DNA of 64,000 nucleotides from Haliotis cracherodii (GCF_022045235.1 NW_027266297.1:19344001-19408000), one strand, 5' to 3'; shown: positions 28,610-55,088, counted from the stretch's first letter. Numbers and translations: made by a program. Notes: generated by a model not told the origin, from the sequence alone.

Positions 28610-28919
28610 ATGCCTAAAAAGGCTCCAAGGGTCCAAGAACCTGAAACTGTCGCCAGGCCGAACCTACAATGGGAGGTTGGGGCACATTCCTTGGAGGACA
28701 TTCTACAGAAGTACCCCCTCCCTCGTGTGGTGCAGTGTGCCTATACACTCAGTGATGACGTATCCACGGAACAATCCAACTTTGATTTTCTTCAGCCCAT
28801 GTTGTTGTACCAGAAGCGTGTGTGTAACAAGGTGACAGCAACCAGTCTCAATACTGATCCTCAAACTGGAAACACAGTGGAGGTCGGGGCTCCCCTCCTC
28901 ATACCTGAAGATTACAAAG
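28610..28919 (+). CDS. g3 coding exon 1: CABIT plus SAM (GAREM-like) protein; spliced product about 890 aa
   Basis: MPKKAP..LQWEVGAHSLEDILQKYPLPRVVQC..FLQPMLLYQK..KVTATSL..VGAPLLIPEDYK G|GTAGGT donor, phase 1. Confidence 0.9.
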
Positions 28920-29129
28920 GTAGGTAAACAGGGCGAGTGAAAGGTTTGGCTGATACCATACCATAGTCATATAGACGAGACTAGGTTCTAAGACAACTGT
29001 TGTGACCGTTAGCTACAGACAGATCCACAGTCAACCATACGGTTTTCTTGGACAGTCACAGTCATTTATATCCGTCTAATAATCGTTTTTCAGTAAGACA
29101 TGTTTTCCTCCAAGACAATGACATACGTG

Positions 29130-29287
29130 ATGGAGTTGGGTTTTGCGCCGCTTTTAACAATACTCGAGCAATATTTTGAATCGAGAAATAACTGGGTTTC
29201 ACACATAATACCAATGTGGGGAATGGAAACCAGGCCTTTGGCGCGACGAGCGAACGCTTGAACCACTAGGCTATCAAATCTCCCCCA
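29130..29287 (-). mobile_element. Diverged SINE family A
   Basis: GCGCGACGAGCGAACGCTTGAACCACTAGGCTA and CGCCGCTTTTAACAATA match family A on the minus strand. Confidence 0.7.
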
Positions 29288-32068
29288 TTGTTTAGGTGAC
29301 ATTGACACACGTTTGCCAACACCGTTTACTCCTCATATCAAAAGGATGATGGACATATCAACGATATGATCGAAATAGATACTTTGGAAATCTCATGCAT
29401 CTTCGACTGATGTCTCTTTAGATTCATATATACTACTAAAAAAAGTTAATGATTACCCAATTCTTGTATATTGCTATAGTTAATCTGTCATGCAATAACT
29501 ATAGTATTATGAAAACATCGGGTGTTCTTTAATTTACATATTTTGTAAGGGAAATGTACAGTTTACGTTTGGGGTTTTTTTTCTCATTGAGCGTTAATTG
29601 GTTATAAATAAAATGAGACTAATATTTACAATATGATTTTAGGAATTCTATTGAGTTCACAACAATAATTTAAAAACAAATTGTCTTTGGTTGTTGGTTT
29701 TGTTGTTGTTTGGCAGGTCTTATACTCATATACATGTATAAACAGAGGAAACAGTGAGTAAGTCTAGTAGCAGTACCACAAGGTCAACGAACGAGATTTC
29801 TTCCGTCCTGAGTTTAAGTGTACGTGTTTGGAGTTTTGGTTTCCTTAAACAATATCACAGGCAACAATGTATGTCTCGCGCCTTTTCAAATTGTCCCCAT
29901 TGTAATCAAGAACGGTGGAATGTAAAATTAAAGTGGCTCACGGCACACGCGTCCTGGTGGGATTCCGGGTTAGAACTGGTCACCAGCCATCTATGCTCGT
30001 CGCAAAAGACAACTGAATGTACCGTGTGGTCAGCTTCAGCGTTATTCCTGAATGCGTGCTATCCTAACCTGAAAACGTGAATCATTTCTCGTAAAAAGTA
30101 TCACTGGATTGTCTAGTCCAGATGGCTTTACATACAGACAGCAGGGCTCCAAATGATATATATATATTAGTCTGCTTAAAATGCTGTTTTCAGTCACAAA
30201 TTAACATAAGGGAGGCGTGGCACTTCTTGACTATTACATGACGCCTGTATTCGATCACTGAACACAGAGTTGTACGCAGGTACGCAAGTTGGTGAGGCTG
30301 CATTGGCAATGAGGCATGATGTTACACTATTCGTTTTGAAAGAATTATTCATGCGTATCTGTACTCAGGCAATCCACAACCAATTGGATTACATCTTATC
30401 CGGAGCTCTGGAATCTGGAATAATGATGGGTGCGGCGTAAAAAAAACGCACTTGGGCCTCATTTTCAGATAAATAGGGCTGCTAAAGTCTGACTTTGTGT
30501 AATTCCCATCATGTCATAATGATCAAATGCTGTAAGCTGTTTGTTTCTGACACACACAAACTAACGAGGCACGGTCTGTTTTTTTTTACATTGAATTTTG
30601 TCTCTTATTGTCGTGAAAAAGCTAATGTGACTTGGAAAAGTTAACGTAATAAAATTTGGATTGTAAATGTGGTCCGGTATTGCCAGAGTTCTGTTTAGGC
30701 AGATGCCACTGTATGTAACTTGGTCGATGTGATTGGTCTATGAGTAGATGGATGAACGAACATCCCTACTGACCCTTAATGCCCAGCGCCAGGCAGGGTA
30801 ACAACAAATACCATTTTTTGACGCGGCCAGGGGAACCACTGACCTTCCAGTCTCCGGAGAGACGCTCCATCCCTTAAACCTAGTGGCTAAAGCGTTTGCT
30901 CGTCACGCTCAAGACCGGGTTCGATTCCCCATATAGGTACAATGTTAACAGCGGCGTAAAACCATACTCACTCACTAAATCACGGCGGCCACAACAATGT
31001 AAAACGACTTGATGTGGCATGTATATATTTAACCACAGAGAAATCAAAAGAGACTGAAGAGGTTTATAGTGTTATGTGCAGGGTTTTCAAGGAGATTTAA
31101 GTGCACACCTTCCTGTTAAATATTACAATGCACACTTTACACTCGTCTTGAGGTTTTGGATGAAGGAGCCGATGAGTCACACTCTTCGTCGCTGTGTCAG
31201 TCGACATTAAACCCCCCTTTCACCTCACTGTAAAACTCCGTCGTTGTCGAATACATAACATGAATATTCATTTACCATACATATGTCGTCTCTGAAAGAC
31301 GTTTCTTTGCGACCAGGAAGAAAATCGCTCATACAACACTTGAGTCAAATTAATAGGTGAAACGTGTAAAATTGATTCCAAATGCATAAAATATTCCAAA
31401 GTGATTATTCATACAACACTGAACGTACAGTGAACTAAAGGACAATTATTTTGCATCAGGTGCTCGCGTAGGAGACAAACACTCTGTGTTTTCAACATAG
31501 AGCCAAGTAGATTTAACCGCGCTAAAATGAATTTTGAACCGAACGCGCAACTCTACATTGAAAACCTTCTCCCAATGGTGACAGTCTGCGTGTGTAGAAC
31601 TTGAATGAAAATGAGCATGTCCAATGTTGTATGCATCTCTTGGGCGTGCCAGAAACATGGACCCAGATTCCCCCTGATAATGTTTGTAGGTTTGTCAGTA
31701 TCATATCAGTGATTTTGGATTTCACCAAAGTGGTATACGCCTGATTATTATACGACCTGCATCACGTCGGGTTTGTCTAACAACTCAAGCTGACACGCTG
31801 TGATAAAACTGAAATTATGTTCCAAGCGGAGTCAAACCAAAACTCACTCATAGCTCATGACTATGCAATCAAACGATAATCTGTGTGCTACATGATCATG
31901 ACGTTACCTGACTAGATTTAAAACATAAGACAAAACTTGCTGGGCTAGGTAATAAAATAAAGGCAGTACTTAACCAGAGTTATTTTACTTAGATAAGAAG
32001 GGAGGTTTTTACATAGATAAGAAGGGGTATAAAGTCTACGGGATCTGACCGTTATGTTGAATAGTCTT

Positions 32069-32246
32069 NNNNNNNNNNNNNNNNNNNNNNNNNNNNNNNN
32101 NNNNNNNNNNNNNNNNNNNNNNNNNNNNNNNNNNNNNNNNNNNNNNNNNNNNNNNNNNNNNNNNNNNNNNNNNNNNNNNNNNNNNNNNNNNNNNNNNNNN
32201 NNNNNNNNNNNNNNNNNNNNNNNNNNNNNNNNNNNNNNNNNNNNNN
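32069..32246. other. Assembly gap (N run) inside the g3 intron
   Basis: Run of N. Confidence 1.
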
Positions 32247-32434
32247 ATTATATCGTCCTGATATGTTATTGCCGACGGATACAGGAAGTTTGAAAGTGAG
32301 TGAGTTGCCCCGAGCTCAAGAATGAGTGAGTTGAGTTTAACTCCGCTGTATGTTACAGCATAGAGTTACGTCGCAATGATGAGAAAAGCCAAACTTTCAC
32401 GATTCAAGATGACCAAGTGAGTTCATAACATTAC

Positions 32435-53285: not shown

Positions 53286-53415
53286 NNNNNNNNNNNNNNN
53301 NNNNNNNNNNNNNNNNNNNNNNNNNNNNNNNNNNNNNNNNNNNNNNNNNNNNNNNNNNNNNNNNNNNNNNNNNNNNNNNNNNNNNNNNNNNNNNNNNNNN
53401 NNNNNNNNNNNNNNN
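53286..53415. other. Assembly gap between SINE copies
   Basis: Run of N. Confidence 1.
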
Positions 53416-53720
53416 TTAGCAATATTCCAGCAATATCATGGCGGGGGACATCAGTAATGGGCTACACACATTGTACCCATGTCGGGAATCGAACCCGGGT
53501 CTTCGGTGTGACGAGCGAACGCTTTAACCACTAGGCTACCCGACCGCCCCTCACGCCTAAGAGATGAAGAGGAAAACCCGAAGTGCTGGGCGTCAGAAAC
53601 ATTTACCAGTTTGGTGAAACCCACGAGCTGACAATTTAACCCGGATTAGAATCCGCGATCACACGTTTCTGGAGTGCCCAAGGGACACAACTCTGCACAG
53701 CGAATTGCGGCGCCTTAGAC
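53416..53720 (-). mobile_element. SINE family A (53416-53550) followed by a SINE family B 5' part (about 53570-53720)
   Basis: ..GCTTTAACCACTAGGCTACCCGACCGCCCC, then ..CTCTGCACAGCGAATTGCGGCGCCTTAGACG..GGGCCACTCGTGCCCC. Confidence 0.85.
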
Positions 53721-54631
53721 GTCCGGGCCACTCGTGCCCCATTCATTCCGTACAGTTATACAGACCATTATAGGCCATAGGCCATAGGCCCAAAACAACA
53801 AAACTGGTTACATGGAGAGAGATATGGTCAAGAGACAGCTGTACTTATTTTGTACATTCCATTATGAATACACATAGCAATATTTTGTATTTACTAGCTT
53901 GGTATTTGTAATATATCTCAGAAATAAACGTTTTCCTCAGATCACAAAAGAGATGACGAATAAACACTGTCCGGTAGTTTAGAGGTCCTGACCCTGAACA
54001 ACAAGACCAGATATTGCACTCATGATGCCTCCAGTCACAGGCAGTCAGCACTACTGGGGGCGCTGTTTAAATAGGGATGCATTCTAGAATAGAATATAAT
54101 AAGGATGTTACAATGCTGCATGTGTACTTATATTGTATAGTATACGGAGGACGGAATGTGCAACTGAAAATACATCAACGTAAACTTTGTCTGCAAGCAC
54201 TTTAACTTGAATCAAAACTAATATGCGAGTTTTAGGCGACATGGTTAAAAAATGTGGTTATGATTTAATTTCAACAACTCAAGAAGCAGTGAATAAGCGT
54301 GAATACCTCATAGTCGTGTACACCCATGTGCTAATAGAATGTAAATAAGGTATATTATAAGCATCTACTGGTTGTATTCTCATATATACAGGACGACAGG
54401 GAATCCTTGTTGTTGAGGTGTTTGTCAGCCACTCGCGGGCTGTACACTTATGCTAATTTACACACAATGTGGAAAGATTTTTTCACCAACAAGGAAGTGT
54501 GTTTTATTTGCTCATCAAGTATATGCGCAAGAGACCCTGACAGGAGCAGAAGAAGAGTGTCCTTTAGTTGGCAGAAGGAGGTTGATCTTTGGTTGCCAGA
54601 GAGAGGGTTGTCCTCTTCTAGCATCCTTCTG

Positions 54632-54902
54632 ATGGATAAGCCAAAACTGCAGTGGGAAACTGGGGTATATTCCTTGGAGGACATTCTACAGAAGTACCCC
54701 CTCCCACGTGTGGTGCAGTGTGCCTATACACTCAATGATGACATATCCACTGAGAAGTCCAACTTTGATTTTCTTCAACCCATGTTGTTGTACCAGAAGC
54801 GTGTGTGTAACAAGGTGACAGCAACCAGTCTCAATACTGATCCTCAAACTGGAAACACAGTGGAGGTCGGGGCTCCCCTCCTCATACCTGAAGATTACAA
54901 AG
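54632..54902 (+). CDS. g5 coding exon 1: CABIT-domain protein; spliced product about 516 aa (an in-frame upstream ATG at 54467 is also possible)
   Basis: Candidate acceptor TTGTCCTCTTCTAG ends at 54621; MDKPKLQWETGVYSLEDILQKYPLPRVVQC..LLIPEDYK G|GTAGGT donor, phase 1. Confidence 0.88.
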
Positions 54903-55088
54903 GTAGGTAAACAGACGTTGAACCATATGGTTACATGTTTGCTCAAGTGCATACTTGCCTTGCCTTTGCAGGTGTGTGTTTGTGACGGATGCCACCGGTG
55001 GGGCAGGATACGCTCACCTTTTCACGAACACCTGGTGTCATCACTTTCTTACATGGATGATACAGTCGGAATCGTATTTAGTAATAGC

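Follow-up and report, generated by a model that had tools for sequence, protein, structure and literature searches.

Gene conversion that is restricted to one domain or one exon of tandem paralogues is well known. Among the closest described systems are the SIGLEC11/SIGLEC16, Siglec-5/-14, and CEACAM pairs, for which the accessible portions of the reports describe conversion that keeps the exons of an N-terminal module alike while the remainder of the genes differs (PMC5701461, PMC4042635, PMC2832619). In this study, we analyzed a 64,000-nucleotide stretch of the genome of the black abalone Haliotis cracherodii (hereafter the window; C34:19344001-19408000 of a 1.18-Gb assembly), which contains five same-strand, two-exon genes of one family (g1 to g5). 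Three of these, g3, g4, and g5, lie 10-16 kb apart on one strand and, judged from their sequences, are old tandem duplicates of a GAREM-like CABIT-domain gene. We found that the 3' part of exon 1 forms a block which is nearly identical among the three genes, whereas exon 2 is deeply diverged. Repeated interlocus gene conversion, together with purifying selection, very probably explains this block.

Extent and mosaic structure of the shared block

A first-pass annotation of the window, made from the sequence alone, had counted 8 differences between g3 and g5 and 6 between g4 and g5 toward the end of exon 1. Both counts were reproduced exactly over the last 77 codons (231 nt) of this exon, where g3 and g4 differ at 12 places. 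The annotation had further held that synonymous sites are mostly shared there, and had proposed a comparison of synonymous divergence (dS) between the exons for each pair. Over these 77 codons, dS is 0.127, 0.103, and 0.061 and nonsynonymous divergence (dN) is 0.034, 0.017, and 0.017 for g3-g4, g3-g5, and g4-g5, respectively. Over the first 224 codons of exon 2, in contrast, the same pairs show 211, 223, and 208 differences (identity of 0.686, 0.668, and 0.690), with dS of 1.10, 1.11, and 1.25 and dN of 0.29, 0.32, and 0.26, and divergence is higher still beyond these codons. The two exons differ at silent sites (Fisher p of 2.4e-9, 2.8e-10, and 6.9e-13) as well as at replacement sites (p of 1.3e-11 to 5.9e-16). 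Silent and replacement differences are both about ten-fold lower in the block, and the ratio of replacement to silent differences is alike in the two exons (p of 0.56, 0.28, and 1.0). Since dN and dS drop together, these results argue for recent shared ancestry of the block rather than for tighter protein constraint alone.

Relative to the end of exon 1, the block runs from -271 (g3 and g4) or about -241 (g5) to +3 (g4) or +12 (g3 and g5). On the 5' side it stops within exon 1, at a position that varies by pair, and on the 3' side it reaches 3-12 nt into the intron, past the coding boundary (Table 1). Ahead of the block, g3 and g4 have diverged over their first 38-41 coding nt (13 codons with 46% identity). 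Thus, the earlier description of exon 1 as near-identical holds for its last 240-280 nt, the span of the block, and not for its 5' start. In the 300 nt on each side of the block (+13 to +312 and -571 to -272), the matched fraction is 0.54-0.61, compared with shuffled means of 0.56-0.60. These flanks at the level of shuffled sequence, along with 67-69% identity in exon 2, bear out the remark that exon 2, the introns, and the 5' ends are strongly diverged. When the three gene regions were compared by blastn, they were found to share the block, the start of exon 2 (~69% identical), dispersed repeats, and nothing else. Because the block is bounded on both sides by diverged DNA, it is not the product of a single crossover or of a segmental duplication. 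Its copies number exactly 3 in the whole 1.18-Gb genome, and an origin of the block from a dispersed repeat was rejected on that count. Between g4 and the older paralogue g1, identity is 44% in exon 1 and 45% in exon 2, and this equal divergence in both exons indicates that exon 1 is not intrinsically frozen in the family.

Within the block, the sharing is a patchwork, as the first-pass annotation had proposed, and all three of its shared strings were recovered: g3 and g4 are identical over 30 nt, g4 and g5 over 98 nt, and g3 and g5 over 136 nt that include 12 intronic nt. A 30-mer was found at 28648 and 44706 and a 24-mer at 44809 and 54734, and two matches to either were obtained in 0 of 100 shuffles; GTAGGTAAACAG is present at 28920 and 54903. 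When the 21 variable places between -241 and +12 are classed by the odd copy, they fall into 7 runs, compared with a shuffle mean of 12.99 (7 or fewer runs in 304 of 100000 shuffles). A Sawyer-type test, which scores runs of variable sites at which a pair agrees, gave 12 for g3-g4, a value matched in 1 of 20000 shuffles. The block is therefore supported as a mosaic of several copying events with different donors.

A weaker island of similarity between g3 and g4 was seen in exon 2, at ~46100-46190 of g4 and ~35770-35860 of g3. A 30-codon window in this island is 86% identical, with a proportion of silent differences (pS) of 0.27 compared with ~0.6 elsewhere, and a g3-type transcript contig from the run X17 matches g4 exon 2 only at 46105-46189. 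This island could be an older conversion tract or a place of local constraint.

Table 1. Coordinates of gene models, shared segments, and assembly gaps, counted from the first letter of the window
Feature	Position	Strand	Remarks
g3 exon 1	28610-28919	+	Phase-1 donor after 28919; translation equals the N-terminus of P0001; homogenised block 28648-28931
g3 exon 2	35278-37640	+	Remainder of the CABIT domain and long tail; diverged from g4 and g5
g4 exon 1	44665-44977	+	Homogenised block 44706-44980; confirmed by contigs of X6 (independent individual)
g4 exon 2	45608-46953	+	X6 contig spans 45211-47000 with 3 differences
g5 exon 1	54632-54902	+	Homogenised block ~54661-54914; first 29 nt homologous at background divergence
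g5 exon 2	58341-59620	+	
g3=g4 identity, 30 nt	28648-28677 / 44706-44735	+	g5 differs at 15 of 30 places
g4=g5 identity, 98 nt	44755-44852 / 54680-54777	+	7 differences, all private to g3
g3=g5 identity, 136 nt	28796-28931 / 54779-54914	+	Last 12 nt intronic; 7 differences, all private to g4
g1	Exon 1 10524-10941; exon 2 from 11952		
g2	Exon 1 up to 19754; exon 2 from 20894		
Assembly gap (N run)	32069-32246	.	Within the g3 intron (28920-35277); clear of all coding sequence and of the block
Two assembly gaps	52258-52385 and 53286-53415 (span 52258-53415)	.	Between g4 and g5

Comparison across species and alternative explanations

A tree of 13 proteins, based on the first 240 residues encoded by exon 2, groups the genes by paralogue, in agreement with what the first-pass annotation had expected for this exon. 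The g3 clade (91/95) contains H. cracherodii, H. rufescens, H. rubra, and H. asinina together with one further protein, the g4 clade (96/98) contains the same four Haliotis species and another protein, and the g5 clade (100/100) contains H. cracherodii and H. rufescens, with g4 and g5 grouped at 87/88. Over these 240 residues, paralogues are 54-62% identical. Since each of these clades spans more than one of the four Haliotis species, the duplications predate the species splits. Among the proteins found, a g5 orthologue is present in H. rufescens only, and the matches from H. rubra and H. asinina belong to the g4 clade; in these two species, g5 has been lost, is not annotated, or was missed by the search.

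For exon 1, an 85-residue core was compared among 10 proteins (45 pairs). Its identity is 87-98% across all pairs, paralogues and orthologues alike and distant species included, and the paralogues of H. rubra and H. asinina are 90-93% identical to each other. Between H. cracherodii and H. rufescens, the orthologues are 95.3, 96.5, and 97.6% identical in exon 1 and 95.8, 97.5, and 96.3% in exon 2. Several residues of the core are shared by the paralogues of a lineage. QPM and GAP are present in all six copies of the North-Pacific species H. cracherodii and H. rufescens, QPL in all four copies of H. rubra and H. asinina, and GDP in both H. rubra copies, and LLHQK is found in g3 and g4 of H. rufescens only and is absent from H. 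cracherodii. The North-Pacific g4 proteins have g3-type residues (V, A) exactly at the 30-nt stretch where g3 and g4 are identical, and g4 of H. rubra and H. asinina has D and I or V at these positions. Some paralogue-specific sites persist, with TEQ in g3 of four species and TEK in the North-Pacific g4 and g5.

DNA-level evidence came from Logan contigs placed on g4 from three runs, X6, which is another individual with the same species label as the window, and X10 and X11 from close relatives. X10 differs from the window at 5 of 209 places in the block, 40 of 1581 in exon 2, and 20 of 586 in a contig that covers the 5' flank together with the initial 69 nt of exon 1. For X11, 8 of 188 places differ in the block; outside it, the upstream contigs differ at 4 of 263 and at 7 of 293 places, and the downstream contigs at 32 of 1187 and at 18 of 509. 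The block of the close relatives thus diverges (2.4-4.3%) like its surroundings (1.5-3.5%), which argues that there is no special freeze at the DNA level. At 44826-44832, where a single contig is placed per run, X10 reads GAGAAG (g4/g5-type) at 2.6x single-copy depth and X11 reads GAACAA (g3-type) at 3.8x single-copy depth; both types occur in H. cracherodii (window and X6). The g4 flank contig of X10 ends at 44733, and in this run the sole contig at 44736, 44739, and 44743 has g3-type letters. The g4 flank contig of X11 retains g4-type letters. X10 and X11 therefore look as if they carry different homogenised haplotypes, that is, outcomes of copying which differ by species.

Taken together, the clustered mosaic, the lineage-specific shared states, and the differing haplotypes of X10 and X11 argue for repeated exchange. 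A number of observations weigh against conversion, or limit how far it can be pressed. As the exon-1 core is 87-98% identical even between distant species, the proteins by themselves do not discriminate between conversion and strong constraint. Distant orthologues differ by 6-10% in exon 1 and by 18-25% in exon 2 (where identity over the first 240 residues is 75-88%), so that exon 1 evolves ~2.5x more slowly, and this implies that purifying selection contributes too. In the exon-1 protein tree, 6 of 8 inner branches have support below 80 and none is starred, and in the approximately unbiased (AU) test on exon-1 proteins, the orthologue clades are not rejected (p of 0.815 for g3 and 0.073 for g4). 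The expectation that exon 1 would group by species is accordingly seen weakly and in proteins only, with the North-Pacific copies grouped at 84/85. The Sawyer-type test is marginal for the other two pairs, with values of 7 for g4-g5 (714 of 20000 shuffles) and 6 for g3-g5 (991 of 20000). No signature of GC-biased conversion was seen in exon 1, where the GC content at third codon positions (GC3) is 0.55-0.56 in g3-g5, compared with 0.77 in g1 and 0.65 in g2, which are unconverted. Finally, the letters read from the Logan contigs cover 40 of 190 differing places, and such contigs drop minor variants and have a noisy mean word depth, as illustrated by a known g3 copy which appears in X6 at only 0.5x depth.

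Some of these features would also be expected if a single homogenising event, a conversion or an exon replacement in the North-Pacific ancestor, had been followed by independent mutation. The block dS of 0.06-0.13 is a few times the species divergence of 2.5-3.5%, so most of the identity could date from about one period, and QPM and GAP are found in all six North-Pacific copies. We nevertheless regard a single event as decidedly unlikely, because the private differences are clustered (7 runs, where shuffles average 12.99 and 304 of 100000 go as low), each of the three pairs is identical over its own segment, and the mosaics of X10 and X11 differ. Moreover, LLHQK is common to g3 and g4 of H. 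rufescens and is lacking in H. cracherodii, and the 90-93% identity between exon-1 paralogues of H. rubra and H. asinina suggests that the homogenised state is genus-wide. Selection at the nucleotide level, through an overlapping RNA or regulatory element or through extreme codon constraint, might instead hold the block constant without any copying. It would be in line with the high identity of the exon-1 core in all 45 pairs, distant species included, and with the 51% identity of residues 20-70 to a pearl-oyster protein. But the block does differ between close relatives, by 2.4-4.3% against 1.5-3.5% in the flanks and exon 2, the replacement/silent ratio is the same as in exon 2, and the identity enters the intron with edges that depend on the pair. 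An Rfam search of the whole window matched no family, so no known RNA explains the block, and the divergence from g1 is equal in exon 1 (44%) and exon 2 (45%). Such constraint would also require parallel changes at the sites shared by paralogues within a lineage, and we consider it highly improbable.

An artefact of assembly or polishing, in which the reads of one copy overwrote the others, might be suspected since runs of 136 and 98 identical nt amid unrelated surroundings resemble mis-polishing and scaffold gaps lie nearby. This explanation is almost certainly wrong. In X6, unique upstream DNA and the first 150 nt of g4 exon 1 lie on one 622-nt contig that shows 3 differences, two contigs at 44833-44980 and 44951-45184 show 0 base differences (the latter has a 17-nt insertion), and the remainder of the g4 intron is on a 1864-nt contig together with exon 2, again at 3 differences. 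The private letters of g4 are reproduced in these contigs, and exactly the 7 letters private to g3 are found on another X6 contig, of 109 nt. The RefSeq models of H. rufescens, H. rubra, and H. asinina, which come from assemblies made independently, likewise have near-identical exon-1 peptides joined to diverged exon-2 peptides, and the X17 transcript contig has the block spliced to exon 2. The copies of the block are real and not an assembly product; the collapse that the first-pass annotation had named as a risk almost certainly did not occur.

Two small differences between the window and these runs were noticed in g4. After 45007, in the g4 intron, X6, X10, and X11 have a 17-nt insertion that the window lacks, the X6 version being one letter off; this is either an indel polymorphism or a small assembly deletion. 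At 44707, in g4 exon 1, the X6 contig has A (32.3 of 32.3 depth) and the window has G, which would change Val to Ile at codon 15 and is probably a within-species polymorphism.

CABIT domain, gene models, and neighboring sequences

Exon 1 and exon 2 were searched separately in the domain and structure searches. The exon-2 pieces of g3, g4, and g5 matched Pfam CABIT (PF12736) with 26.3, 39.9, and 32.3 bits, respectively, above the cut-off of 24, and the g3 match lies at residues 82-183. The exon-1 peptides alone matched no Pfam family even at E<=10, and a sequence search of exon 1 against PDB likewise gave no match at E<=10. A homologue search with this peptide on its own yielded 1 candidate and no scored match, a blank that is to be expected from the length window of the search. 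The CABIT part of exon 2 gave chance-level PDB matches only (polysaccharide export proteins, E of 0.48-0.83). Residues 20-70 of g4 exon 1 align with residues 11-62 of the pearl-oyster CABIT protein P0008 (51% identity, E of 7e-11), and residues 67-267 of P0008 match positions 58-240 of the CABIT profile. This alignment and the profile match of P0008 together imply that exon 1 covers roughly the first 85 of the 255 profile positions. By such transitive alignment, exon 1 would correspond roughly to the N-terminal third of the CABIT profile. The first-pass annotation had proposed that repeated conversion keeps the N-terminal half of the CABIT domain constant; the conversion is supported, and the portion concerned would be about a third (~1-85 of 255) rather than half. 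Conversion may act to keep the module constant, in the sense of that proposal.

As described in the available parts of two sources, the CABIT structure consists of two subdomains that are interwoven, one an extended beta-sheet and the other SH3-like (bioRxiv 10.1101/2024.10.01.616165; PMC13381594). The proteins g3-g5 resemble the CABIT adaptors GAREM1/2 and THEMIS, as far as these are covered in the same parts, in having a Pfam CABIT match and just one CABIT domain, with a long proline-rich tail behind it (PMC13381594; bioRxiv 10.1101/2024.10.01.616165). They differ from the GAREM type, in which CABIT is combined with a C-terminal SAM domain, in that g3 is without a Pfam SAM domain. In the search for SAM, no Pfam family was matched in g3 exon 2 (E<=0.01) or in its last 109 residues (E<=1). 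The C-termini of g4 and g5 end earlier than that of g3, and the g3 C-terminus (37311-37637) is conserved in g3 of H. rufescens and H. asinina. YENI motifs are present in g3 and g5, and their Y-x-N is a putative site for the SH2 domain of Grb2.

The models of g3, g4, and g5 read off the sequence equal the database proteins P0001, P0003, and P0006 with 100% identity, and in all of g1-g5 a phase-1 intron lies between ...DYK/G and WF.... The nearer of the two gaps between g4 and g5 ends 1217 nt upstream of g5 exon 1. Since no gap lies in any exon or block, the reading frames are unaffected. In g4 and in g5, exon 1 and exon 2 are each on gap-free sequence. The link between exon 1 and exon 2 of g3 spans a gap and has indirect support from the database models and the X17 transcript contig. 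Models from four species (P0001, P0010, P0002, and P0014) combine an N-terminus and an exon 2 that are both of g3 type. The X17 contig, 3615 nt in length, has a g3-type 5' end and the block, departs from the genomic sequence exactly at the exon end, and returns 493 letters on, at the sole stretch of exon 2 where g3 resembles g4.

Further members of the family were seen along C34, with at least 10 CABIT-like exon-2 matches including g1-g5. Two are just upstream of the window. Examples are 19315258-19315857 (+), 19322484-19322942 (-), 30293963-30294517, 38677264-38677686, and 40506112-40506789. For two of the exon-2 matches, an exon-1-like counterpart was seen ~18-24 kb further upstream, at 40487829 and 30270111.

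Repeats were also noticed around the three genes. At 43851-44318 and 45138-45371, contig depth is 10-100x single-copy in all three DNA runs, which marks dispersed repeats flanking g4 exon 1, and a ~39-nt tandem duplication lies at ~45146-45240 within the second of them. In the g5 intron, a run of ~35 G (55093-55129) is followed by a repeat element (55130-55230 / 55365-55629), which recurs with 79-87% identity in the g5 intron (57951-58160 listed) and downstream of g4 (47310-47590). Pieces resembling a short interspersed nuclear element of transfer RNA type are found in the g3 intron at ~29200-29275.

Proposed mechanism and relation to known systems

Ectopic recombination requires a near-identical stretch and is blocked by mismatches, and an island of ~250 nt is near the lower length limit usually quoted for it. 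Under repeated gene conversion, short-tract, non-reciprocal copying between g3, g4, and g5 would have overwritten the 3' part of exon 1 again and again. The tracts range from tens of nt (30) to ~280 nt, and their edges are set by the points where similarity ends. Confinement to the block could be explained if the exon-1 module, which evolves more slowly, stayed above the identity threshold for ectopic recombination and each conversion renewed the exon-1 similarity, while the introns, the upstream DNA, and exon 2 drifted under the threshold. Selection against conversions into a functionally diverged exon 2 may add to the confinement.

A further, more speculative possibility is that the exon-1 module is kept uniform by selection as a shared docking surface, either for the same upstream partner or as an interface targeted by pathogens. 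A hint in this direction is that an island of ~250 nt with flanks at random level nevertheless encodes peptides which are 87-98% alike across the four Haliotis species compared, for paralogues and orthologues alike, with exon 2 diverged. We hold a docking surface to be fairly unlikely. If it were true, conversion would allow the three copies to co-evolve as one, different outputs would come from the tails, which differ in the presence of YENI motifs and in the long C-terminus of g3, and the locus would be an intracellular invertebrate counterpart of the logic of paired receptors. Irrespective of such a role, the presumed N-terminal third of CABIT is the part common to the three adaptors and offers a lead for binding studies.

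The locus is of interest as a clean, small, and bounded case of partial concerted evolution, in which a young island with a visible mosaic of donors lies in otherwise saturated genes. There are practical consequences as well. Trees or dating of abalone CABIT genes will be misled by exon 1, and read mappers and variant callers will meet three exons that cross-map. Our literature search returned no report linking CABIT genes with gene conversion, and among the papers that it returned on gene conversion or paralogs in Haliotis, none concerns g3-g5 by title or abstract.

As an instance of conversion restricted to an exon of tandem paralogues, the abalone CABIT case is ordinary and adds nothing to the theory of conversion. 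It differs from the primate paired receptors in setting and in scale. Those are vertebrate cell-surface immune receptors in which, according to the accessible portions of the reports cited above, kilobase tracts cover ligand-binding domains and the rationale is a shared ligand with opposite signalling. The abalone case, in contrast, involves three adaptor genes of cytosolic type in a gastropod, with a tract of only 240-280 nt. The annelid Dlx genes, as far as the available part of that report goes, resemble g3-g5 as an example of partial conversion between lophotrochozoan duplicates and differ from them in gene family (PMC3199776).

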